Shown: positions 47,359 to 64,000, numbered from the stretch's first letter. The stretch is 64,000 nt of DNA from Blepharisma stoltei ATCC 30299 (GCA_965603825.1 CBFDEM010000040.1:434001-498000), one strand, 5' to 3'. Notes: generated by a model not told the origin, from the letters alone. Program-made: numbers and translations.

Positions 47359-48594
47359 TTAAGGAGAATTCATTTTCGGCGCATTCAATCCAAGCCCTAG
47401 CAAGTTTCCCCCTACTGCTGCCCCACTTTTAGGGCCTTGACTTTGTCTTCCAGCTATCATTCTTGCAGCTTTAGGGTTTTCTGCTGTATAAATTGTCCCA
47501 TTTTCATCTTTCTGCTCCTCCAAATTGCTCAAAATATTTTCTGTTTTTTCAAGCTTGCTGTAGTTATCAGTAACTTTGATATGCGCATCTGCCAGATTAG
47601 TGCTCCAATTGCTCTTAGACTCATGCTCTCTTACCCAGTCTTCATCATGCACTTCTTCGCCTTGAAATTTCCTCGCTTCTTTTCTGGCCCAATCTACAAG
47701 TCTTGGAATTGACTGTGTTCCGGTAGGTGCGAACTTTGCGTTCATCGTCAAGGTATCTTGCCAATCAATAGTGATGGATGAAGTCAAATTCATCCCTCCA
47801 TCCACTTTTAGGATTTGTCCTGTGATGTTCGCAGCCCTTTTTGAGCATAAAAAGATAACAGCTTTGACAATGTCATCTGGGTTCGCTATTTTTTTCATCG
47901 GGTTTGCCTTCATCATTCTGTTTCTTAAGACGTCTATTTCATGAGGAGTTAGGCCAGCGTATTTAAATAAATTGGTTTTGGTCATCCCAGGAGCCACGGC
48001 ATTTACTCGAACAGGAGCTAGCTCAAGTGCTAAACATTTCGTAAGCATTTCAAGACCGGCTTTGGCCATACAATTGGAGATCATTCCTTGCTGGGGACGA
48101 TTTCCCCATTCGCATGACAAATTCACTATGCAGCCTCTGCTTTTTTCTAAAAAGCTTTGGCACATATGAATTATATGGTAGACTGCTCTTAGGTTTATAT
48201 CAATAATGTAGTCGTGATCTTGGGGATATGTGGATTCTAAGTCATTTTCAAAAATAATTCCGGCTGCGTTAATAAGAATGTCTAGCCCACCAAAGGTTTC
48301 CACAGCACTTAGGACCATATCATATTGCTGGCGATCGATTGCAAGATCACACTGGATTGCAACAGCTTGATTGGGGAATTGGTGACCGATTTTCTCGAGT
48401 TCTTCTAAGTCTCGACCTATTAAAGCTACACGAGCTCCTTGATTTAAAAGCCAAACGGCGCAAGCTTTACCTATTCCTGAGGAAGCACCAGTAATCAGAA
48501 CTCTTTTAAGAGCGAAATAGCGCTTAGCAATTGCGTTTTGAGCTACTTGGATGCCTAAAGATTGAAATCCAGACCACAGTGGTGGGTTACTCAT
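47359..48594 (-). CDS. Short-chain dehydrogenase/reductase, atypical active site, C-terminal extension
   Basis: TGASSGIG, LDILINAAG, VRVNAVAPG, ITGQILKVDGG. Confidence 0.9.
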   Translation of the reverse strand: MSNPPLWSGFQSLGIQVAQNAIAKRYFALKRVLITGASSGIGKACAVWLLNQGARVALIGRDLEELEKIGHQFPNQAVAIQCDLAIDRQQYDMVLSAVETFGGLDILINAAGIIFENDLESTYPQDHDYIIDINLRAVYHIIHMCQSFLEKSRGCIVNLSCEWGNRPQQGMISNCMAKAGLEMLTKCLALELAPVRVNAVAPGMTKTNLFKYAGLTPHEIDVLRNRMMKANPMKKIANPDDIVKAVIFLCSKRAANITGQILKVDGGMNLTSSITIDWQDTLTMNAKFAPTGTQSIPRLVDWARKEARKFQGEEVHDEDWVREHESKSNWSTNLADAHIKVTDNYSKLEKTENILSNLEEQKDENGTIYTAENPKAARMIAGRQSQGPKSGAAVGGNLLGLGLNAPKMNSP

Positions 48595-49012
48595 CTTAAA
48601 TATTTATTTACTTGAATAATTCAAACTTTAGGATAGCTAATATAAAGTAAACTAGCCAAAGCCTTATTTAAATACAAACTTCAGTTAAATTTACAAGAAA
48701 AATCTTAATTAGCTTTTGGTTTAATAAGTAAATATTTTCCATTCAATAGCTGTTTAACATTTCTATATGATCATCCTTCAAATATAAGTTTCTACTTCTT
48801 TGTTTCCTTATTTTCTTATATTTTATCTCTTTTCAATACTTCATTCTCTCCAATTAATATTTTTCTAATCAATTTCGTAAGTCCTTCAATGATTCATAGC
48901 TTTCCTATATGACCTTTCCTTTAGAATCCTTTCTTGCCTCTCTCTTTTAGCCTTATCCTAGTTTCCATACATTGTGCTTTTATTGAGTGAAATAGAGTGG
49001 CTGATAATAAAG

Positions 49013-53465: not shown

Positions 53466-55040
53466 TTAAAATCCTATTTGTTTAATTCTATCTTTTGAGT
53501 TCATTTGAAATCTGTAAAATGAGCTTTTACAACAAAAATATAGGACTTTGCCTTTTCTTACTTTGTATGATGATGGTATTAGATTTGGAAATCCTGAGAC
53601 TTTACAAAACATTCAATCTTTTCCTGAATAAGAACTGTAAAAATTTTCTTCAGAATCAAATGCCATCGTGCTGTATTTCAAGCAAATAATAATTCTTGGA
53701 ACTCCGATCTTAAACTTAACTGCTACGTCACTGTATCTTTCGCTTTCTAAATTAAAAGAGTAGATTCTATCGTGATTAATACCGGAAATGTAAAAATCAT
53801 TATTGAACAAAACAACTGAGCATCCATGAGAAGGGACTAGCATATCAGGCAATTTCTGCCAGCTGTTTGAGGAAATTGAATACTTTGCAGCAATATTTAA
53901 ATCTTGGCATTCATTTTTTCCTCCAAAAATAAAGACATGTCCATCAAAATAAGCACAGCTAGAATGAGTGCAAGGGGTATATGACTCAATAATTTTAATT
54001 TCAAAGTTTTTATCTATAATAAAAGCTAATCCTGAATATTGCTTATTTTCTATAACGTTTCCATAGCAAAAGATTCTATCATCAGGGATTTGACAGCATG
54101 ATATAGAATCACTTAAATTCTCAGGGAGATTTAAATTGATTTTTTCTTTGTCTAAAGTGATAAGATTTAGTATATTTATGGTTTTTGAATTATTTGTAAA
54201 TGAAACAATGCAGTTTGATTCCAATATGCTGTTGTTTGGGGTTCTTCTTTTTGAGATTTTTGCTTTCTTTTGAGGAGCACCAATGGTTTCGCATTCAGAG
54301 ATATTTTCCTGGGATTTTAATTTCATCTTAAGCGATTTATTCTCTACGTCTAGCTTTTTATTTTGGAATTTTAACTCATCATTAAAATTTTGTATGATTG
54401 TGAGCTGATTTGATAATAAGCTAATTTTGTTTTCAATCATTAAGAAAAGATCTTGATTATTGGGATTACTGTCATCTATAAAATGTCTTTTTAAAACTTC
54501 ATCACACTGCTCTAATATTTTTTTAAGGTGATTTTGCATTTGATTTTGATGATTTTCTAACTGGGCCTCAAAGAACTGCTTAGGCTCAAAGTTTATAGTT
54601 AAGTCTAAAATATTTCCTTTTAAGTCATCTAACTGATCAACCATTAATATTTCAATCTGATTCATGATATCGATTGGCGATGCTATTGGACCACTTTCAT
54701 GAATTTCATTATTATAGAAATGGGAATAATTCTTTTCAACTCTTTCGAATTTATTTAAAACAACTTTAAGCTTTTCAAATAAGAATTGATTATAAGATGA
54801 AAGCTTTGCAATTACTTCATTTCTTCTATACCTTATATCTTTGATTTTCATATTTAAGGATTTTCTCAATTCTTCAGATTTAAGATTTATTGGAATTAAT
54901 GATAGCTGATGTGATGAGCCTCCTAAGCAGTGAATTCTCATGTGATCATTGCAGATAAATGTCCTTGTACTTCCACAATTACATAAAAAATCAGGAAATT
55001 TTGTGCAGTCTTTTATAAAACATTGTATATTGTTTTCCAT
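53466..55040 (-). CDS. Kelch-like beta-propeller protein with N-terminal Cys/His zinc-binding motif and coiled coil
   Basis: C-x4-C..CNC..C-x2-H..H N-terminus, IFCYGN, VFIFGG..W blades. Extends past TGA 53613 to TAA 53466-53468. Confidence 0.8.
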
Positions 55041-55162
55041 TTTACTATTATTTATGGCTAACTAAAAAAATATGAATCAACTATAATTAATATAAATTCT
55101 TTAGAAATTATAAAATTTAATTATTAGCCAAATTATTGGATTAATATTTTATAAATTACGTT

Positions 55163-56719
55163 CTAAATAATCGAATAAATTTGCTGGATCTTTTTCTTGG
55201 AATTCATTTTAAACTTGAAGAATTGTTTTCCACAAGAAAAATACATCTCGTTTCCTTTCAAAACTTTATAGCTTGATGGCGCTATATTTGGAAGTCCTTC
55301 AACCTGTCCAACAGTTCATTCTTTACCTGTCACAGAGCTAAAAAAATTTCCAATCGAATCTACAATTATAATGCTATTTCTCAATGCTAAAATAATTTTT
55401 GATACTCCTGAAGTAAATTGCAGAAAATTATTTGAGTATAAATCTTTTGATGGATCATAAATGTATAATTTTTCTAGATTAAAGCCAGTGATATAGATAT
55501 TTTCTTTGTAAGGAGCACAAGAGCACCCATGAGATGGAAAAGGCAAAGGCTGACATTGAATTCATTCCCTATCAAACAATGAGAATTTTTCTGCTAAATC
55601 TAAATCACCATGCCTATTTTGTCCTCCAAATGCAAAAATAAAGTCTTTATAATAAGTTAAACTCGAATTTGTGCAAGGGATTCCAGAACTGCATATTTCT
55701 ATGTTTCAAGAGTTATCGATGATAAAGGTGATGCCTGAATAATTGTGCTGGGTATGATTTCCATAGCAAAAGATTTTATTATTAGAAATAGGGCAATATG
55801 ATATGTTACAAAATGCAGTTTCCGAAATATTTATGTCAATATTCTTATGAGTAAGATTGTCTAGATCTAAGAGTTGTATCGTTTTTGAGTTCATTTTGAA
55901 AGAAACAATATAATTCCTCTCAAAAATGCTTTGGTCAATACTAGATGATGTTTTTTGTCTTTTATAAGGTTTACTCTTTATTTTCAATTTGAATTGGTCT
56001 TGCAGGTGCTTAGCTTTTTGTGATAGACTTGATTTTTCTTTTCTTACTGTGTCCAGCATATCTTTTAGTTCTCTGTTGAATTTTTGTATGCTAGAGTAGC
56101 TATTTGCAAATCAATTAATTTTTGCCTTCAAATCAATAAAAATGTTCCCAGTCGATCTTAGTTCTTTAAAATCAACATAATTTTCTTGCATTTTTGCATC
56201 AAGAAACTGAATTACTCCTTCTATATTTTCTTCGCTTATTTCTTGATTTTCATTTTTACTGTAGTTTTCTTGCATCAAGCCAGCAATATGGCTATTAACG
56301 TCATTTATCCGATATTTTAATTCTTTTTCCACTTTATATAAGGTTCCTTTATCTCATATTTCATTACTATCGCCATTATTTTCTTGTATTAAGTTCATTT
56401 GATTATGCAATTCTTTATATGAGTTTTCTATCGCAAAAAGTCTTTCATTTATAAGTTTAAAATCAGCTTTTTGAATTTTTCAGTTCACTGATGGCATATT
56501 AGCTATATTTGATCTAACATTTTCTAATTCATATAGTCTATAGTTTAAAGAATTTATACAATTTCTATCTTCAAAATTAAGTGAGTCAGAAGTAAGGGCT
56601 ATGCATTCATCTGATATTTTTATATTTTTTCTTGGATCTTGGCTCAAATTTGGCTGAAAGGAATAATCATATTCAAATTGATTTTCGTTTTCAACTTTGA
56701 AGGATTGATATTTAGACAT
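55163..56719 (-). CDS. Kelch-like beta-propeller protein, tandem paralog of the previous gene
   Basis: Track fragments join through six TGA-Trp codons. Propeller aligns with the neighbour (IFCYGN, PCT, FGG, PSHGCS, PSSYKV). Confidence 0.8.
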
Positions 56720-56789
56720 TTTGATTAATAATTTGACCCCCCAACAAAATTATATAATATCGAAATTTTTTTATCTAATCATTATTTCT

Positions 56790-57848
56790 TTATAGTCTCG
56801 GTAATGGCAACTTCGGACCTTCCTCATTTTCAAAAAGCGGCATCATTGCATCATTTCCAACCTCTTCAAGCGAATTTGGAATCCAGTTAACTCTTCCTGA
56901 TTCTTTCTTTACTAGTTTATGTTTGACAGCTTCTTTGAAATTTTCGGCTCTAAAATGAGTCATTTGAACTGCTAAATTGTACTCCATCTTTAAGCAATCT
57001 CTGTAGTTTAAATGTTTTCCTCTATTAAAAGCTTCATGAGCTACTCTAAGTGATAATGGACACAGTTCTTGAATTTTAGATAAAGCTCTCAAGCTCCATT
57101 TAGAACCTAGTTCCCTGAGCCTATACATTATTGTTTCTATGCCTACATAAATATTAAAGCAATATCTCAATTCCTTTAAAACTGGAATTATTCTTGATTG
57201 CTTTAAATCTGGTTCAACATGGTACTTTTTCAAAACATCTATAAAACTTTCAGTGTCTTGCATTTCTTGTAAAACTTTTTGAATATCCTCTTCAATGTAA
57301 TATTGGGAAAACCCATATAAATAGCAGTCTGTTCCGTTTAATCTATCCCCAGTCAGCATTAAATAAAGTCCTAATTCAGGATAGTTCATCCTGCTTAAAT
57401 GGTAAGAAGCTCCAGCATCTGGAGAAAATCCAATTGAAGTTTCTGGCATAGCCCAAATTGTGTTTGGGGTAGAAACTCTAATATTGCATGACCAAGCCAA
57501 TCCTGATCCTCCGCCCATAGTAATCCCATCCATTAAGGCAATTCTCATGGTAGGCAAAAGGGAGACATAGTAAACAGCTGCGAGCTCTCCTATAAAAATT
57601 TCTTCAGAGCTTATTTTTCCCGATGATATGGAAATTATGTCTCCGCCTGCACTGAAAGCTCTACCTTGTCCATAAAATACAAAATTTTTATTTTCTTCTC
57701 GGGCCTGAGAAATAAGCCTATGCAGTAAATGAATCATTTCTAGATTCCAGGAATTTAAAGCATATGGACGGTTAATTTTGACAAAATATGTGTTTCCTTT
57801 AGCAACGCTTACAAGAGGTGACTCGATTCTGGATGAAGATTTTCGCAT
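56790..57848 (-). CDS. HIBCH: 3-hydroxyisobutyryl-CoA hydrolase-like (crotonase fold), PTS1-like PRL end
   Basis: GRAFSAGGDI, MDGITMGGG, AMPETSIGFSPDAG, CPLSLRV. Confidence 0.9.
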   Translation of the reverse strand: MRKSSSRIESPLVSVAKGNTYFVKINRPYALNSWNLEMIHLLHRLISQAREENKNFVFYGQGRAFSAGGDIISISSGKISSEEIFIGELAAVYYVSLLPTMRIALMDGITMGGGSGLAWSCNIRVSTPNTIWAMPETSIGFSPDAGASYHLSRMNYPELGLYLMLTGDRLNGTDCYLYGFSQYYIEEDIQKVLQEMQDTESFIDVLKKYHVEPDLKQSRIIPVLKELRYCFNIYVGIETIMYRLRELGSKWSLRALSKIQELCPLSLRVAHEAFNRGKHLNYRDCLKMEYNLAVQMTHFRAENFKEAVKHKLVKKESGRVNWIPNSLEEVGNDAMMPLFENEEGPKLPLPRL

Positions 57849-57879
57849 TTTTTTTTATATTCAAATATTTTGATCAAGC

Positions 57880-57902
57880 CATATCCGTTTCACACAAAAT
57901 GG
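57880..57902 (-). promoter_or_regulatory. 23-bp conserved upstream element, copy 1
   Basis: CATATCCGTTTCACACAAAATGG, exact reverse complement of 58549-58571. Confidence 0.65.
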
Positions 57903-58548
57903 GAGTTTAAATTATCTTATAATTAGGGTAAATTATTTAGTCGCCCTGGATTAGAAGGTCTAAAATAGTATATAGTTGATAATTTATAATAAATTGAAAA
58001 GAACAATCTTATTATAAGTGTTTTAATGATATTAAAAATTTGCTATACTCTTATTTCAAAAACAGCTTTATTAAAAATTTTGTTAGCTACTTATAGGCAA
58101 AAACTGGGTATTATTGGCTTTCTAAGTGAAATTTATAAATTGATTTGGTCTATTACTTAAAATTAAATAATAAGCTTAAATTTACTAAAAAAATAATAGT
58201 TCCTATTCTCATCATTTGAGTGAAAATTCGGAATAGTGAATAGAAGCACGTCTAAGAGTCTATCATAATGCTAGTCCTGCAGCTTCTAAGCCATTAACCT
58301 ACTCCTAAATATATATAGCTGCTATTTTAAATTTCCTTTTTAATAATATACATCTCTTGAAAAAATATAAAGGAATACAAGGGCAAATTGATTCGAAGCT
58401 GTTATTTGCCTCTCTTATAATATTTTTATATAAATCAGTTTAAATTTAGGCTATGGATTTATATTCAATAGTGCTTAAGCAAATTTATATTGTTTTAAGG
58501 TAAATTAATTTAAATTATCTAGTTAAATTCATTTAATAAAACTTACCT

Positions 58549-58571
58549 CCATTTTGTGTGAAACGGATATG
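58549..58571 (+). promoter_or_regulatory. 23-bp conserved upstream element, copy 2
   Basis: CCATTTTGTGTGAAACGGATATG. Confidence 0.65.
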
Positions 58572-58738
58572 TTTCATTCTCAAAATGGACTTAAGCACAA
58601 TTAATTCATTATCTGCAATTAGGAGTCATGTAAGTAATCATTTAAGACAAAATTGCTAGTTTTCAGCCTTAAATCCTAAAGAAAAAGTCATCTAAGTCCA
58701 AAAATTTACAAAAAAAAATCTATGATATAAACTTAAAA

Positions 58739-59794
58739 ATGGATTCTAAATCTAGCAATAGCGATGCTGCGGCTATCATGATTGAGCAAAACAACACCTT
58801 CTTTCTGAAGTTTAATCGACCAAACCAAATGAATGCTTGCAATCTCGAGCTATCGCATGCCATCCAAAGCACTGTTCTCAGAGCTCTTGCTGAAAAGAAA
58901 AACATAGTATTCTATGGGGAAGGCCGAGCATTCTGTGCAGGAGGGGATATTTTAGGAATATTGCAAGGGGAGATAACGCCACAAGAGATTTTTGGGGCTG
59001 AAGTCAAGACATTTTATATGCTATCCACAATTCAAACACATACTGTAGCCATGATGGATGGGATCACGATGGGAGCTGGAGCTGGTCTTGCTTGGGCCTG
59101 TTCAATCAGAGTTACAACTCCAAAAACAACGTGGGCTATGCCAGAATGCTCAATAGGTTTCTGTCCTGACGCCGGAGCCTCATATTTATTAAACAGAATC
59201 CGCTTTCCTGAGCTTGGTTTATACTTACAGTTAACAGGAGAAAGAATTAATGGTACTGATTGTTATCTCTTTGGGTTTTCACATTATTACATTGAAGCTG
59301 ATATGGAGACTGTCCGCAAAGAGATATTTGAAGGCGGAGACATTATAGCAGTATTAGAAAAATATCACACTCAGCCAAACACAAATAAATCAACTATTTT
59401 ACCGGTATTAAGAGAGTTGCGAGAGTGCTTTAATACCAGTTATAGTCTTGAATTCATCATGCATAAACTCAGAGAAAAAGGAACTGCGTGGAGCTTAAGG
59501 ATCTTGGAAAAACTTAACTCCCTGTGCCCATTGTCGCTTAGAGTAGCCCATGAAAGTTTCAGAAGAGGAAGACACATTTCATATGCCCAAAGCCTGATCA
59601 TGGAATATAACCTAGCTATACAAATGCTTGGGTACCGGCCAGAGAACTTTAAGGTAGCTGTGGAGCATAAAATGGTCAACAAGGGCAAGGGAAGAGCAAA
59701 TTGGGTTCCATCCTCACTTGCTGAAATTGGAGAGTCTACTATTATTCCTTATTTTGCGAATGAAGAAGGAAGACTAGAAGTACCAAAACTTTAG
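58739..59794 (+). CDS. HIBCH: 3-hydroxyisobutyryl-CoA hydrolase-like paralog, PTS1-like PKL end
   Basis: GRAFCAGGDI, MDGITMGAG, AMPECSIGFCPDAG. Colinear with the divergent paralog. Confidence 0.9.
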   Translation: MDSKSSNSDAAAIMIEQNNTFFLKFNRPNQMNACNLELSHAIQSTVLRALAEKKNIVFYGEGRAFCAGGDILGILQGEITPQEIFGAEVKTFYMLSTIQTHTVAMMDGITMGAGAGLAWACSIRVTTPKTTWAMPECSIGFCPDAGASYLLNRIRFPELGLYLQLTGERINGTDCYLFGFSHYYIEADMETVRKEIFEGGDIIAVLEKYHTQPNTNKSTILPVLRELRECFNTSYSLEFIMHKLREKGTAWSLRILEKLNSLCPLSLRVAHESFRRGRHISYAQSLIMEYNLAIQMLGYRPENFKVAVEHKMVNKGKGRANWVPSSLAEIGESTIIPYFANEEGRLEVPKL

Positions 59795-60074
59795 AATTCA
59801 TACATTAATAAGTACTTTATTTAAATTTTGTGCTAAAAACCGCGATATCATGTTTTCGTCACGATTAAGCCGTTATTCCTTAAACATAAATAAATCTAGA
59901 AAAAAAATCATCCTGATTGTTAAGCACTTTTCCCTGATTGTTTCTTGTTAACAAATAGGAGCAATTCTCAAAGATAACTAAATAAATTTTTTAACCGGTA
60001 TGAATTAAAAACGGAAACATAAAATTTAATATCTAAAAGGGCTATCCGTTAAAAATTCACACAAATTAATAAAT

Positions 60075-61751
60075 ATGAATCCTAAAAGACTCAGCTATGT
60101 TTCAGGGATAGGAAAAAAGCTCCTTGGAAATACTATTGGCGATATGCTGAGAGAAACTACAAGGAAATTTCCTAACAATGACGCTCTTCTAAGTTTGCAC
60201 GAAAACACAAGATGAAATTATAGTGAATTTTTGCAACGCTCAGAACACATTGCTGAAGGCCTGCTAGCTCTAGGGCTCCCTCGCCAAAGTAGAGTTGGGA
60301 TTTTCTCTCCAACTTGTAAAGAGTGGGCTTTAGCTCAGTTTGGGACCGCTTTAGCTGATTTAATCCTCGTTAATATAAACCCAGGATCTCAGGTCTCTGA
60401 ACTCGAATACATGCTTAACAAAGTCCAAGTTTCTGCCCTTATCATGCCTCCTGGGTTCAGGAACGCAAATTACATTAAAATGATTGAAAATTTAGCTCCA
60501 GAAATAAATTCTTCGAAAATCGGTGAGCTTTCTTCAGTTAAACTGCCCCATTTGAAGCATTTAATTTTGATCGGAAATGAAAGCCATAAAGGAATGATGA
60601 GTTTTGATGAGCTATACCATCAAAAAACCAAAGATTACAATAAAATTACGCATGATATCTCCTTTGATGATCCATGCGATATAATCTTTACTTCAGGTAC
60701 TACTGGAAAACCAAAAGGGGTCGCACTTTCACATCATGGAATCGTAAACTGCACATGAAACACCACTGAAACTGGAATGCTAGGATGGAATGAGACGGAT
60801 AAAGTTATTATTGGGGTTCCTTTATACCACGTTTTTGGAACATTAGCAAATGTTTGCTGTGTTTTAAGAGGATCTGCTATGGTCTATCCAGATTACAGTT
60901 TTAAGCCAGGGCTTATTATGGATATTGTTGAGAACGAAAAGATCACCGCATTATTAGGAGTCCCGACTATGTTCCAGCTGTATCTTCATGAACAAGAAAA
61001 GCAAAAAAGGAATGTAGAGTCGCTTAGAACTGCATTTATGGCTGGATCTGCAATTGACAGGGAAACTTTAAATAGGATCATAAATGAGCTCCATATAAAA
61101 TCTGTCACAAACTCCTATGCCATGACTGAATGCTCTGGACCAATTTTTCAGATGTTGGAGAGCTCAAGTTTTGAAAAAAGAGTGAACACAGCAGGAGCTA
61201 TTCATCCAAATATTGAAGCAAAGCTTATCAATAAAAAAGGCAAAATTGTTGAAAGAGGAGAAGTAGGAGAAATTTGCATCAGAGGATATTCAGTATTTAA
61301 ACATTACTGGGGTGATGAAAAAGCAACTAAAGAAACCATTGATCATAATGGATGGATGCATTCAGGAGATTTAGGAACTTTAGATGAAGATGGGTACATT
61401 AGGATTGTTGGGAGGAATAAGGATCTCATTATAAGAGGAGGTGAAAACATTTATCCAGCTGAAATTGAAGAACTCTTAATGAAGCATCCTAATATTGAAG
61501 TGGCTTCAATATTTGGGATCCCAGATCACATAGGAGGAGAGCAAGTGTGTGCCTGGATCAAAATGAAGCCAGGAAAACCAGAAATTAGTTATGCAAGCGT
61601 AGTGGAGTACCTCAAAGGTAAACTCTCTGACTACAAAATTCCAAAATCCATGAAAGTAGTCAATTCTTTTCCAATAACAAGTTCTGGAAAAATAATGAAA
61701 TATGTCATGAAGGACATGCACATACAAGAATTGAAGAATAAGAATGAATAA
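60075..61751 (+). CDS. ACSF2: Acyl-CoA synthetase (AMP-forming), ACSF2-like
   Basis: LSYVSG..TIG start, LVNINP, FTSGTTGKPKG, YAMTE, GWMHSGDLG, IIRGGENIYP. Two TGA-Trp codons. Confidence 0.88.
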
Positions 61752-61982
61752 AAAATTAGGATTAAATTATTATAATGGACATAAAAATATATTTAAAAGC
61801 GATAAGAAAGATTCAAAAACTAATAAATTTATAAACGAAATCTTTCTAGCCTTATGATATCGACTCACTTTCCTCTTGAAGCTCAAAATCGTTTGCTTAA
61901 TATCTGCCCATAAAACGCATAAGTTCTATTCAATACTAATTATTCATATCTTTTCTTATTATTTTAGCCGATAAAAATGGTT

Positions 61983-62018
61983 ATATCCGTTTCCCAATAT
62001 GGTTCACTCAAAACGGAT
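61983..62018. promoter_or_regulatory. Paired copies of the cluster motif upstream of acyl-CoA oxidase
   Basis: ATATCCGTTTCCCAATATGG (61983-62002) and inverted AAACGGAT (62011-62018). Confidence 0.5.
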
Positions 62019-62046
62019 TCAATATCGTTCTAATAAAAATTAATTC

Positions 62047-64000
62047 ATGGCAGAGCTAAAACGTCTCAATCTCATCAGCTCACACATCCTAGGGAACTTC
62101 AAATTCGAAACTAAAAGCAATTCCTTAGACCAGTATCGAGCTAGAGGGAAAAATTTCAACCATGACCTTCTCCGCCGCAAAACTTTTGAGCCATTCTACG
62201 ATATGTACACCTTAATCTGGGACTTGATGAAAGAAAAGCCAGACTTGTACGATCACAGCGTGGCTGCTGATTTTGACAGAGAAAAATTAAAAGAGCGCTG
62301 CCATAGACAAATCATGCATTTGTTCCCAAAATGTGGACTGAACCACGAGCTAAACCTTAAGAACCCAATTAAGAAAATTTCTATGTGTTTGGGATTCTGC
62401 ACAAATGATATCGTGCTTGGAACACGTACAGTTGTTCATATAGTGCTATATACAGAAGCTCTTACAAATTTAGGCACCGATAAGCATCTGAATTTGATTA
62501 ACAGAGCTTATACTCTTAAAGACTATGGCTGCCTTGGCATGACTGAGATTGGCCATGGTTCAAATGTGGCTAGTATTGAAATTACAGCTACTTATGATAT
62601 GGCAACCAGGGAATTCGTGATTAATTCACCTACCCCTACTGCTGTTAAGTGGTGGATTGGAGCTGTAGGGAAAACATCCAATATGGCTGTTATTTTTGCA
62701 CAGTTGATTTTGAAAGGAATCAACTATGGAGTGCATGCTTTTGCAATACCAATAAGGGACTATGAAACACATAAAATCTTAGATGGAATCATTATAGGCG
62801 ACTGTGGCCACAAATTAGGAGTCCAAGGCATTGACAATGGCTTCATGATTTTCAGAAATTACAGAGTCCCATATGACTGCTTTTTGGATAGATTTTCACA
62901 GGTTACACCTGAAGGACAATTTGCGAGCTCAATTAGAAATAACAAAAAAAGATTTGGAACTATGATAAGCTGTTTAATCAGAGGAAGAGTTGTGTGCATT
63001 GGAGGAATGGAAAGCTATGCTAGAAACGCTCTTACCATTGCGATTAGATATGGAGCTATAAGAAAACAGTTTGGACCTGATGGAGAAAGATCAATTTTAG
63101 ACTATCAACTTCACAGATATAGACTAATGCCATATCTAGCTAGGCTTTTTGCTTCAAATGCTGCTACAAAGTTCGTGTCGAGGTTATACAATTCCAGAAT
63201 TCCACTTATGAGGACTGATCCTGAATCACCATTGGTGACAGAATATCATTGGCTGATCACAGTATTCAAATCTCTTAGTACCTGGAATGCTTTTAAAACC
63301 ATTCAAGAGTGCAGAGAAGCATGCGGTGGACATGGATATTCCACATATGCTGGCTTCAATAAGCTCAAGCAAGATGCTGATGTAGTTTGCACCTTTGAAG
63401 GCGATAACAATGTTATTATCCAGCAAGCTGAAAGATACATTCTTCAAGCAGCTCAAGTAAGAGCAGCTAATAAGCCAATTGCATCCCAATACTTGCAATT
63501 CATTAATCTCCAGCCAGCAAAGCCAAAAATTGAATGTGCCGAGCACTTAAAGCACCCTGAAGTTTTAATATCTCTTCTTGAATACCGTTGCAACTACTAC
63601 CTTGTCAATGCCGTTAACAAGCTCCAAGAAAACATGGGGAGATTTTCTGATATGGACTCTACATGGAACAATACCCAGGTTAGGTACTTGTTTGTTCTTC
63701 CTCAAGTATTTGGAGAACTGTTGATGCTGAAGGAATTAAACAATTTCGTGAAAGAACTCCAGACTTCCTGTCCAGCCACTGCTCAAATAGTGCAAAGTAT
63801 CATGCTCCTATATGGAGTCCATGTCCTTGAAAACGAATCAGGGATGATTAAGACTCAATTTACTGAGAACGAAGTTAGGTGGATCAATGACACTGTAATT
63901 GAGCTTTGCAATGAGGTAGGGGAAAATGCAGTAAACATTATGGATGCTGTAGCGTTCCCTGATCATGTAGTTGCATCAGTTCTAGGACATAGTGATGGGC
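62047..64000 (+). CDS. ACOX: Peroxisomal acyl-CoA oxidase (3' truncated; missing from ORF track because it has no stop in the window)
   Basis: MAELKRLNLISSHI start, GCLGMTEIGHGSNV, KWWIG, GIDNG, ECREACGGHGY, TFEGDNNV. Confidence 0.93.
   Translation, partial: MAELKRLNLISSHILGNFKFETKSNSLDQYRARGKNFNHDLLRRKTFEPFYDMYTLIWDLMKEKPDLYDHSVAADFDREKLKERCHRQIMHLFPKCGLNHELNLKNPIKKISMCLGFCTNDIVLGTRTVVHIVLYTEALTNLGTDKHLNLINRAYTLKDYGCLGMTEIGHGSNVASIEITATYDMATREFVINSPTPTAVKWWIGAVGKTSNMAVIFAQLILKGINYGVHAFAIPIRDYETHKILDGIIIGDCGHKLGVQGIDNGFMIFRNYRVPYDCFLDRFSQVTPEGQFASSIRNNKKRFGTMISCLIRGRVVCIGGMESYARNALTIAIRYGAIRKQFGPDGERSILDYQLHRYRLMPYLARLFASNAATKFVSRLYNSRIPLMRTDPESPLVTEYHWLITVFKSLSTWNAFKTIQECREACGGHGYSTYAGFNKLKQDADVVCTFEGDNNVIIQQAERYILQAAQVRAANKPIASQYLQFINLQPAKPKIECAEHLKHPEVLISLLEYRCNYYLVNAVNKLQENMGRFSDMDSTWNNTQVRYLFVLPQVFGELLMLKELNNFVKELQTSCPATAQIVQSIMLLYGVHVLENESGMIKTQFTENEVRWINDTVIELCNEVGENAVNIMDAVAFPDHVVASVLGHSDG

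Follow-up and report, generated by a model that had tools for sequence, protein, structure and literature searches.

Four consecutive genes at positions 56790–64000 of a 64,000-nucleotide stretch of Blepharisma stoltei contig 40 (the window) raise the question of whether they form a metabolic gene cluster or stand side by side by chance. Four ORFs fill this interval when TGA is read as Trp, which is the organism's own code; this read-through was applied for the trees and the listings of end motifs, and for database searches proteins with in-frame TGA were divided into the separate pieces between TGA codons. The preliminary description had assigned the genes to two HIBCH-like hydrolases, an ACSF2-like ligase, and an acyl-CoA oxidase; the row itself was confirmed (ORFs, Pfam domains, and transcript contigs), and the assignments are supported by Pfam, 3bpt, ACOX1, and ESM Atlas matches, with the ACSF2 subfamily of the ligase tentative.

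H1 (56790–57848, minus strand, 352 aa) and H2 (58739–59794, plus strand, 351 aa) are predicted to be HIBCH-like 3-hydroxyacyl-CoA hydrolases, which is supported by full-length ECH_2 domains (PF16113) scoring 246 bits (E = 8e-73) and 242 bits (E = 2e-71), respectively, against a cut-off of 27.2 and over profile positions 3–335. The top structural-database match of H1 is human HIBCH (PDB: 3bpt; E = 1e-40, full length), to which H1 and H2 are only ~30% identical. In the alignment, AMPETSIGFSPDAG of H1 pairs with AMPETAIGLFPDVG of 3bpt, with AMPET..PD opposite AMPET..PD and the acidic pair kept, and H1 also keeps the AGGD and GITMGGG segments; the H2 equivalent of the MPET..PD segment is AMPECSIGFCPDAG. 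We take the Glu and Asp of MPET..PD to be catalytic and the glycines to form the oxyanion hole, the residue roles of HIBCH and the ECH_2 family. Human HIBCH, which H1 resembles in its GGD, GITMGGG, and AMPET..PD segments, is mitochondrial, whereas H1 and H2 have no presequence and end in PRL (..LPLPRL) and PKL (..LEVPKL); four further paralogs in B. stoltei are of mitochondrial type.

The ligase (60075–61751, plus strand, 558 aa, in-frame UGA at 60213 and 60756) matches AMP-binding and AMP-binding_C in the pieces flanking the second in-frame TGA (60756–60758), which were searched separately. Among named ESM Atlas clusters its best match is ACSF2-like with a score of 0.99, a score that bacterial AMP-binding clusters equal, and its best PDB matches are fatty-acyl/feruloyl-CoA synthetases in a database that contains no ACSF2. 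The acyl-CoA oxidase (62047–64000, plus strand, continuing 104 nt beyond the window; 685 aa) has an ACAD-like middle domain (Acyl-CoA_dh_M), ACOX_C_alpha1, and the ACOX C-terminal domain, all exceeding the Pfam cut-off, together with a CREACGGHGY segment and a match to rat ACOX1 at E = 4e-87. Three non-homologous enzyme families, ECH_2, AMP-ligase, and ACOX, are adjacent here with no other gene in between.

All four genes are intron-less and transcribed as separate mRNAs, as seen in gene-shaped transcript contigs from four runs of one study, whose contig depths cannot order the genes by expression. In these runs the transcript contigs show no joints, the spacer between H1 and H2 is free of transcript contigs at 57985–58575, and the ligase contigs cross both in-frame TGA codons. 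A search for non-coding RNA at 56000–64000 gave no Rfam match at E ≤ 0.1. Annotation on both sides bore out the earlier remark that the row stands among genes of unrelated function: the upstream side has ArgRS, tesmin-CXC, CFAP96, an SDR (8 kb off), ribosomal S23, an MTR4 helicase, and two Kelch proteins, and the downstream side L22e, a Rieske/FAD oxidoreductase, a kinase-LRR protein, PUF, Myb, a Ras GTPase, and HSP70. A Myb gene is found 10 kb from the cluster. The possibility that the cluster extends past 64000 was rejected, since the next 20 kb holds these unrelated genes (L22e through HSP70). No hydratase/MFE, thiolase, or PEX gene is present there or upstream within the window, and because no hydratase, thiolase, or peroxin gene is linked, the acyl-CoA pathway is incomplete at the locus.

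The protein termini had also been read as signs of peroxisomal import. Ciliates are reported to have both Pex5 and Pex7; the latter is in the core peroxin set of alveolates and has been found in Tetrahymena (PMC5755239). The oxidase begins with MAELKRLNLISSHI and ends in ..KIFN, without a PTS1; its RLNLISSHI segment is PTS2-type (RLx5HI), with Ile in the last position, where the quoted N-terminal consensus, (R/K)-(L/V/I)-x5-(H/Q)-(L/A), has L or A (PMC5755239). Canonical RLx5HL occurs in 12 oxidase paralogs and HI in three, in the same place, and Stentor oxidase homologs likewise have R[LV]x5H[LF]. Across the 21 oxidases of the B. stoltei genome, an N-terminal PTS2 is carried by 15 and a C-terminal PKL, PKI, or SKL by six, and none carries both. 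The 15 have RLx5H[LI] at residues 6–8 (in one contig 12 tandem copy, at residue 44 counting from the first in-frame Met) and no PTS1; the remaining six end in PKL (four), PKI, or SKL, and none has a PTS2. PTS1 and PTS2 oxidases form two clades with support of 100/100. The ECH_2 proteins group into four of mitochondrial type, nine ending in PRL/PKL, four with an N-terminal MERLx5H[LI], and four without a signal, with 13 PTS-bearing HIBCH-like hydrolases in the genome; the nine with PRL/PKL are one clade (99/95).

PRL in H1 and PKL in H2 depart from the strict PTS1 tripeptide, quoted as (S/A/C)-(K/R/H)-(L/M), in having Pro at position −3 (PMC5755239). Such P-[KR]-[LI] endings are found in 9/9 members of the ECH_2 clade of H1 and H2 and in five of the six PTS2-less oxidases (the sixth has SKL), which argues for a PTS1 flavour specific to the lineage; P-[KR]-L would then be the PTS1 preferred in Blepharisma. 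Plants accept both PRL and PKL as PTS1. The ligase has no PTS1 or PTS2 at either terminus, as the preliminary description had observed, and the same holds for its three close paralogs. The peroxisomal reading is backed in the other two families by PTS1 and PTS2 signals that are clade-wide and mutually exclusive. H1, H2, and the oxidase are predicted to be peroxisomal, and a peroxisomal repertoire of 21 acyl-CoA oxidases and 13 PTS-bearing hydrolases would be unusually large; no literature on Blepharisma peroxisomes or acyl-CoA genes was found. The clean switching between PTS1 and PTS2 among subfamilies should help to predict which ciliate proteins are peroxisomal and to study targeting-signal swaps during gene-family expansion.

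Families of this size (21 oxidase genes, at least 22 ECH_2 loci, and ~23 AMP-binding loci) make expansion itself a candidate cause of the row. Tandem-collapsed loci of the three families were placed at random in 200,000 trials, and all three families fell within 8 kb in 0.09% of trials (P ~9e-4), so expansion as the sole cause was not borne out. In 12% of simulations an oxidase and an ECH_2 gene came to lie within 8 kb of each other at least once, which speaks for a chance neighbourhood later fixed by segmental duplication, with the long promoter motif of the hydrolases inherited and the short core elsewhere coincidental. We regard this explanation as unlikely, given the placement of the full trio and the promoters described below.

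A 16-nt element, TTGTGTGAAACGGATA, lies in sense orientation ~35–50 nt upstream of the H1 ATG (57882–57897, minus strand) and ~170–185 nt upstream of the H2 ATG (58554–58569, plus strand). Elements of this type are the sole conserved block across the upstream regions of four clustered hydrolases on contigs 40 and 30, and the surrounding intergenic DNA is unalignable. TGTGTGAAACGGAT has four copies in the ~41.5 Mb genome, one upstream of each of these hydrolases, and an exact 14-mer of the hydrolase promoter element has four genomic copies only. The ligase has the motif as a 7-mer only, AAACGGA at 60009–60015 (plus strand) and AACGGAT at 60044–60050 (minus strand), 25–66 nt upstream of its ATG; the oxidase has GAAACGGATA at 61984–61993 (minus strand) and AACGGAT at 62012–62018 (plus strand), 30–62 nt upstream of its ATG. 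Extended alignments of the oxidase and ligase promoters were informative for the core motif only. The closest ligase paralog, on contig 47 (82% identical), has AAAACGGAT ~30 nt upstream. By contrast, the promoter motif is missing from the 55% paralogs, which lie on contigs 44 and 36 without related neighbours. The sister oxidase on contig 30 has GGAAAACGGAT at −58, in antisense orientation as on contig 40, and the 10-mer GAAACGGATA has 39 copies genome-wide, three of which lie within the cluster's 4.1 kb and two at the contig 30 locus.

Within 300 nt upstream, ACGGAT is present at both clustered oxidases (contigs 40 and 30), and AACGGAT precedes the ligase, the 82% paralog of the ligase, and a ketosynthase pair on contig 30, against 1/36 ACGGAT carriers among the other ECH_2 and oxidase promoters (the unlinked ECH_2 gene C4:486k). 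Over 220 kb of the B. stoltei genome, AACGGAT has a background rate of 0.059 per kb. With paralog pairs counted once, the hypergeometric P for core enrichment is ~4e-4. Coincidence is hard to reconcile with a core shared by three non-homologous promoter sets (oxidase, ligase, and ketosynthase), and passive inheritance with a long motif that survives in unalignable intergenic DNA while the proteins share ~60% identity; the chance explanation does draw on the shared descent of the hydrolase promoters, because the four clustered hydrolases form one clade (87/84). We infer that the cluster genes are co-regulated, and the TTGTGTGAAACGGATA element is presumably the site of one transcription factor.

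The trees pair H1 with C30:314k (95/96), H2 with C30:311k (99/99), and the oxidase with C30:305k (100/100), and the gene order Ha-Hb-x-oxidase is retained on contig 30; the oxidase and both hydrolases were, by these trees, duplicated together as a block. Kelch genes flank both loci and were duplicated along with it, so the similarity between contigs 40 and 30 is that of an ordinary segmental duplication, and the retention of linkage could be passive, as a chance neighbourhood would have it. Conserved linkage outside B. stoltei, raised in the preliminary description, is absent in the one other heterotrich contig examined (L046): its oxidase, a pre-duplication ortholog that branches just below the contig 40/30 pair and keeps PTS2 in the RLx5HL form, lies beside neither an ECH_2 nor a ligase gene and lacks the motif. 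Among foreign ECH_2 proteins, the closest (P0007, from a metagenome contig; 37% identity, ending in YKL) has no acyl-CoA neighbours either, and synteny was thus not found at the closest foreign oxidase or ECH_2 contigs. Within B. stoltei, the shared rare motif, the block duplication, and the placement simulation agree with the earlier view of the genes as a unit rather than a chance row. Because the rare promoter motif is shared and a duplicated sister cluster exists, the four-gene acyl-CoA row looks like a real metabolic gene cluster, of a kind that we did not find described for ciliates in the literature searched.

We favour, and consider probable, the reading that the row is a co-regulated metabolic gene cluster, specific to the B. 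stoltei lineage, with a role in a peroxisomal side branch of beta-oxidation. A carboxylic acid would be activated by the ligase, either at the membrane of the organelle or outside it. The oxidase would produce 2-enoyl-CoA together with H2O2, water would be added by an unlinked hydratase or multifunctional enzyme, and H1 and H2 would free the 3-hydroxy acid, recycling CoA. The order of reactions and the substrates are inferred, and the placing of the genes in one pathway is deduced solely from the chemistry of the enzyme families. Each of the four promoters carries the AACGGAT core, extended to the 16-nt element in the hydrolases, and the block of oxidase and hydrolases was later copied to contig 30 with the motif retained and a motif-bearing ketosynthase pair alongside.

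Such a logic would be that by which plants handle isobutyryl- and propionyl-CoA in the CHY1 route. Arabidopsis CHY1 is a peroxisomal 3-hydroxyisobutyryl-CoA hydrolase that acts in valine, isobutyrate, and propionate catabolism; the B. stoltei set would be similar in placing an HIBCH-family hydrolase with PTS1 beside peroxisomal acyl-CoA oxidases and in a sequence of oxidation, hydration, and hydrolysis of 3-hydroxyacyl-CoA that would release CoA and keep toxic enoyl-CoA from building up. In plants the genes are dispersed, whereas B. stoltei has 13 PTS-bearing paralogs, two of which neighbour an oxidase and a ligase and have a promoter motif in common with them. Fungi and plants offer well-known metabolic gene clusters (PMC4347624, for example), and the locus resembles these in its three non-homologous families of one presumed pathway that are adjacent, separately transcribed, and alike in a shared regulatory sequence. 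It is also like them in being lineage-specific and in having a duplicated variant with extra genes, but is small (four genes) and has no linked transporter. If confirmed, it would be a compact, testable cluster of four expressed genes, with a 16-nt element of four genomic copies and a sister cluster as internal replicate.

The motif might instead mark a general peroxisome or lipid-response regulon in which adjacency is incidental, a view that we consider quite improbable. The yeast oleate response element and the animal PPAR response element are short cis-elements of peroxisomal acyl-CoA oxidase and related genes, and the B. stoltei element is likewise short and common to an acyl-CoA oxidase and related enzyme genes; every motif-bearing enzyme acts on acyl thioesters, and both C4:486k and the contig 47 ligase paralog carry the core while being unlinked. 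The element differs from these, however, in sequence and in being limited to one oxidase/hydrolase subclade and its neighbours: within 300 nt the core is absent from the other 19 oxidases and from 16/17 other ECH_2 genes, PTS bearers included, and the 10-mer has only 39 genomic copies.

The contig 30 locus carries as extra genes a PTS2 HSDL2-like reductase and the pair of FabF-like ketosynthases, whose shared motif could point to biosynthesis. Blepharismins, described as hypericin-type compounds, bear ethyl and isopropyl side chains (PMC7356801), which would suggest propionyl-/isobutyryl-type starter units, acyl groups handled by HIBCH-type pathways. That the motif genes provide or modify short branched starter units for specialised metabolites like these is very doubtful, and we see just as slim a chance that the AACGGAT regulon (two oxidase/hydrolase clusters, two ligases, and the ketosynthase pair) is part of blepharismin biosynthesis. 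ACP, cyclase, and aromatase genes are absent at both loci, the ketosynthases have no PTS, unlike the oxidase and hydrolases, an oxidase and a hydrolase break down such acyl groups rather than build them, and nothing links these genes to the pigment; a literature search for blepharismin biosynthesis genes found none. Were it true, an aromatic polyketide would be made in a ciliate by ketosynthases that are type-II-like and dissociated, together with an editing branch in the peroxisome. In keeping with that idea, the ketosynthases of the genome number only eight, all stand-alone, with no type I KS or type III PKS match, and one partner of the contig 30 pair has its first catalytic His replaced by Asp.

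The window corresponds to positions 434001–498000 of contig 40 in an assembly of 41.46 Mb and 64 contigs. The published macronuclear genome of B. stoltei comprises 25,711 genes with tiny introns and UGA encoding Trp (PMC9942806), and in the window long ORFs form from merged fragments once TGA is taken as sense. Reading the ORFs in this way, together with domain matches, recovered the four acyl-CoA genes that the preliminary description had placed across 56790–64000. These are two HIBCH-like hydrolases, both with a full-length ECH_2 domain, named H1 (56790–57848, minus strand, C-terminal PRL) and H2 (58739–59794, plus strand, C-terminal PKL); a ligase (60075–61751, plus strand) with AMP-binding and AMP-binding_C domains and two in-frame TGA codons; and an acyl-CoA oxidase on the plus strand that runs from 62047 to 104 nt beyond the window end, starting with MAELKRLNLISSHI and ending in KIFN. 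Human HIBCH aligns with H1 over the full length (E = 1e-40) with the AMPET..PD acidic pair retained, and rat ACOX1 matches the oxidase at E = 4e-87. The best PDB matches of the ligase are fatty-acyl and feruloyl-CoA synthetases; its naming as ACSF2-like follows the best named ESM Atlas cluster and should be read as a lead, not as proof.

Transcript contigs from four runs of one study coincide almost exactly with all four gene bodies, none of them contains a joint, and the spacer at 57985–58575 has no transcript contigs in these runs; each of the four cluster genes therefore gives its own mRNA, intron-less and with a very short leader. The TGA codons of the ligase are read through in the transcript contigs. 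Contig depths of H1, H2, and the oxidase vary in step over the four runs, which are too few to establish co-expression. The divergent H1–H2 spacer (57849–58738) is 890 nt long, about three times the length of the other cluster spacers, and gave no Rfam match.

Upstream of the cluster are genes for ArgRS, a tesmin-CXC protein, CFAP96, an SDR, ribosomal S23, an MTR4 helicase, and two Kelch proteins, and downstream are L22e, a Rieske/FAD oxidoreductase, a kinase-LRR protein, PUF, Myb, a Ras GTPase, and HSP70. A continuation of the cluster past 64000, which had been considered possible, was not found: by the downstream gene annotation the oxidase is the last cluster gene, and across both annotated flanks there is no linked hydratase, thiolase, or peroxin gene. 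The two Kelch-type genes directly upstream of H1 (55163–56749, with six in-frame TGA codons, and 53469–55061, both minus strand) have as paralogs an array of five beside a sister cluster on contig 30 (C30), the best pair sharing 50% identity. The upstream SDR, 8 kb from the cluster, is FabG-like (47362–48603, minus strand, 414 aa) and has a long tail rich in Gly and Ala; it shares 28% identity with the HSDL2-like SDR of C30, lacks a peroxisomal targeting signal, and has no copy of the promoter motif described below nearby.

Placement was simulated with tandem arrays collapsed, leaving 19 oxidase, 18 ECH_2, and 23 ligase loci. At least one oxidase/ECH_2 pair within 8 kb arose in 12% of random placements and a triple including the ligase in only 0.09%, so family expansion, which might have made such a row expected, is not its explanation. 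A chance neighborhood that was passively retained is, set beside these two frequencies, a rather unlikely account of the cluster.

The terminal signals PRL/PKL (PTS1-like) and RLx5HI (PTS2-like) are each one residue off the textbook consensus, and targeting signals were surveyed in all full-length paralogs in the genome. Fifteen of the 21 acyl-CoA oxidases carry RLx5H[LI] at residues 6–8 and no PTS1, the exception in position being a tandem copy on contig 12 that has the motif at residue 44, counted from its first in-frame Met; the six PTS2-less oxidases end in PKL (four), PKI, or SKL, and the two classes form two clades (support 100/100). The ECH_2 family includes a nine-member clade ending in PRL (seven) or PKL (two) (support 99/95), four mitochondrial-type members with basic N-termini, four that start with MERLx5H[LI], and four without a signal. 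Being mutually exclusive and clade-following, the signals offer strong indirect evidence that they are functional, and the same pattern suggests that P-[KR]-L is the usual PTS1 in B. stoltei. The N-terminal motif is also present in Stentor oxidase homologs, and Pex7 is one of the core peroxins of alveolates and occurs in Tetrahymena (PMC5755239). Genome-wide, the ECH_2 family has at least 21 full-length genes, among them a signal-less tandem triple on contig 39; contigs 51 and 12 hold tandem arrays of oxidase genes, and subfamilies switch between PTS1, PTS2, a presequence of mitochondrial type, and the lack of any signal (loci L011–L044).

The sister cluster C30 contains, in order, two divergent FabF-like ketosynthases, an oxidase, a P-type ATPase, an ECH_2 hydrolase (PKL), the HSDL2-like SDR, and a second ECH_2 hydrolase (PRL). 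The SDR between the hydrolases (312613–313518; L008:4613–5518) matches PDB 3kvo at E = 1e-90 and starts with MRRLELLDKHL, a PTS2. Phylogenetic analysis paired H1 with the C30 hydrolase at 314k (95/96), H2 with that at 311k (99/99), and the two oxidases with each other (100/100), which places the tandem hydrolase pair, as judged from the trees, before a block duplication of the oxidase and both hydrolases. The order Ha-Hb-x-oxidase is kept between the clusters; one inversion separates them, and the genes inserted in each differ. Since Kelch paralogs flank both loci, the event was an ordinary segmental duplication.

A 16-mer, TTGTGTGAAACGGATA, is found upstream of H1, H2, and both C30 hydrolases, in the H1–H2 spacer at its two ends only, and the remainder of the four upstream regions is unalignable. 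Of the 14-mer TGTGTGAAACGGAT the genome has exactly four copies, one in each clustered hydrolase promoter, and the 10-mer GAAACGGATA has 39 copies genome-wide, three within 4.1 kb at the contig 40 cluster and two at C30. The core AACGGAT (background 0.059 per kb, measured over 220 kb of this genome) is present in the contig 40 oxidase promoter at −34 and, in antisense, at −62, in that of its C30 sister at −58, likewise in antisense, in the ligase promoter at −31, where AAACGGA is also found at −66, and at about −30 of a ligase paralog on contig 47; neither the SDR nor the ATPase of C30 has it in its promoter, and it is missing from more distant ligase paralogs. The contig 47 paralog (779975–781648, minus strand; L047:4975–6648), which is 82% identical to the cluster ligase, adjoins a tubulin-like gene, has AAAACGGAT about 30 nt upstream, and may serve C30 as its unlinked ligase. 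Among the remaining ECH_2 and oxidase promoters, 36 in number, only one has the 6-mer ACGGAT, against three of three heterologous promoter sets (hypergeometric P ~4e-4, paralog pairs counted once, our own arithmetic); this one control promoter belongs to a signal-less ECH_2 paralog on contig 4 at ~486 kb (L024), with GAAAACGGATAA 31 nt upstream. Conservation of the 16-mer in otherwise randomized spacers and reuse of the motif by non-homologous genes argue for selection. Given these control counts, a general lipid-response regulon appears quite improbable. The AACGG core resembles Myb-type sites; an R2R3 Myb gene is located 10 kb downstream of the cluster (contig 40, 507196–507999; L007:9196–9999), and as a candidate factor it is only a lead.

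AACGGAT also occurs at two sites in the 215-nt promoter of the divergent, stand-alone ketosynthase pair of C30 (302080–304832; L006:4080–6832), which brings the motif-bearing genes to ten: four hydrolases, two oxidases, two ligases, and two ketosynthases. KS1 has a Cys-Asp-His instead of a Cys-His-His triad, with Asp for the first catalytic His, and KS2 is canonical. This substitution, and a genome in which eight stand-alone ketosynthases were found but neither a type I KS domain nor a type III PKS match, speak for a biosynthetic role tied to the pair and to the blepharismins, which bear ethyl and isopropyl groups (PMC7356801); we regard such a role as very improbable.

In a protein search the PTS1 hydrolase clade had no close relatives except a metagenomic ECH_2 protein (37%, ending YKL), which is not clustered. 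A Logan contig of another UGA=Trp heterotrich carries an oxidase with a canonical PTS2 that is sister to the contig 40/C30 pair (SH-aLRT 87); neither an ECH_2 nor a ligase gene lies within 10 kb of it, and the motif is absent. The linkage that might have been conserved in other heterotrichs was thus not seen in the one Logan contig examined, so the cluster seems either to have formed inside the Blepharisma lineage or to have disappeared from this relative.

The cluster is probably a co-regulated peroxisomal oxidase–hydrolase module fed by an extra-peroxisomal ligase, whose localization, co-regulation, and substrates we infer, and which would resemble the plant CHY1 route. The ligase would supply the module from outside the peroxisome, and the hydration step would come from enzymes unlinked to the cluster. 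One candidate is a ~1100-aa ORF on contig 58 that matches ECH_2 in part and that we take to be a multifunctional enzyme; two MaoC hydratases in the genome are further candidates.
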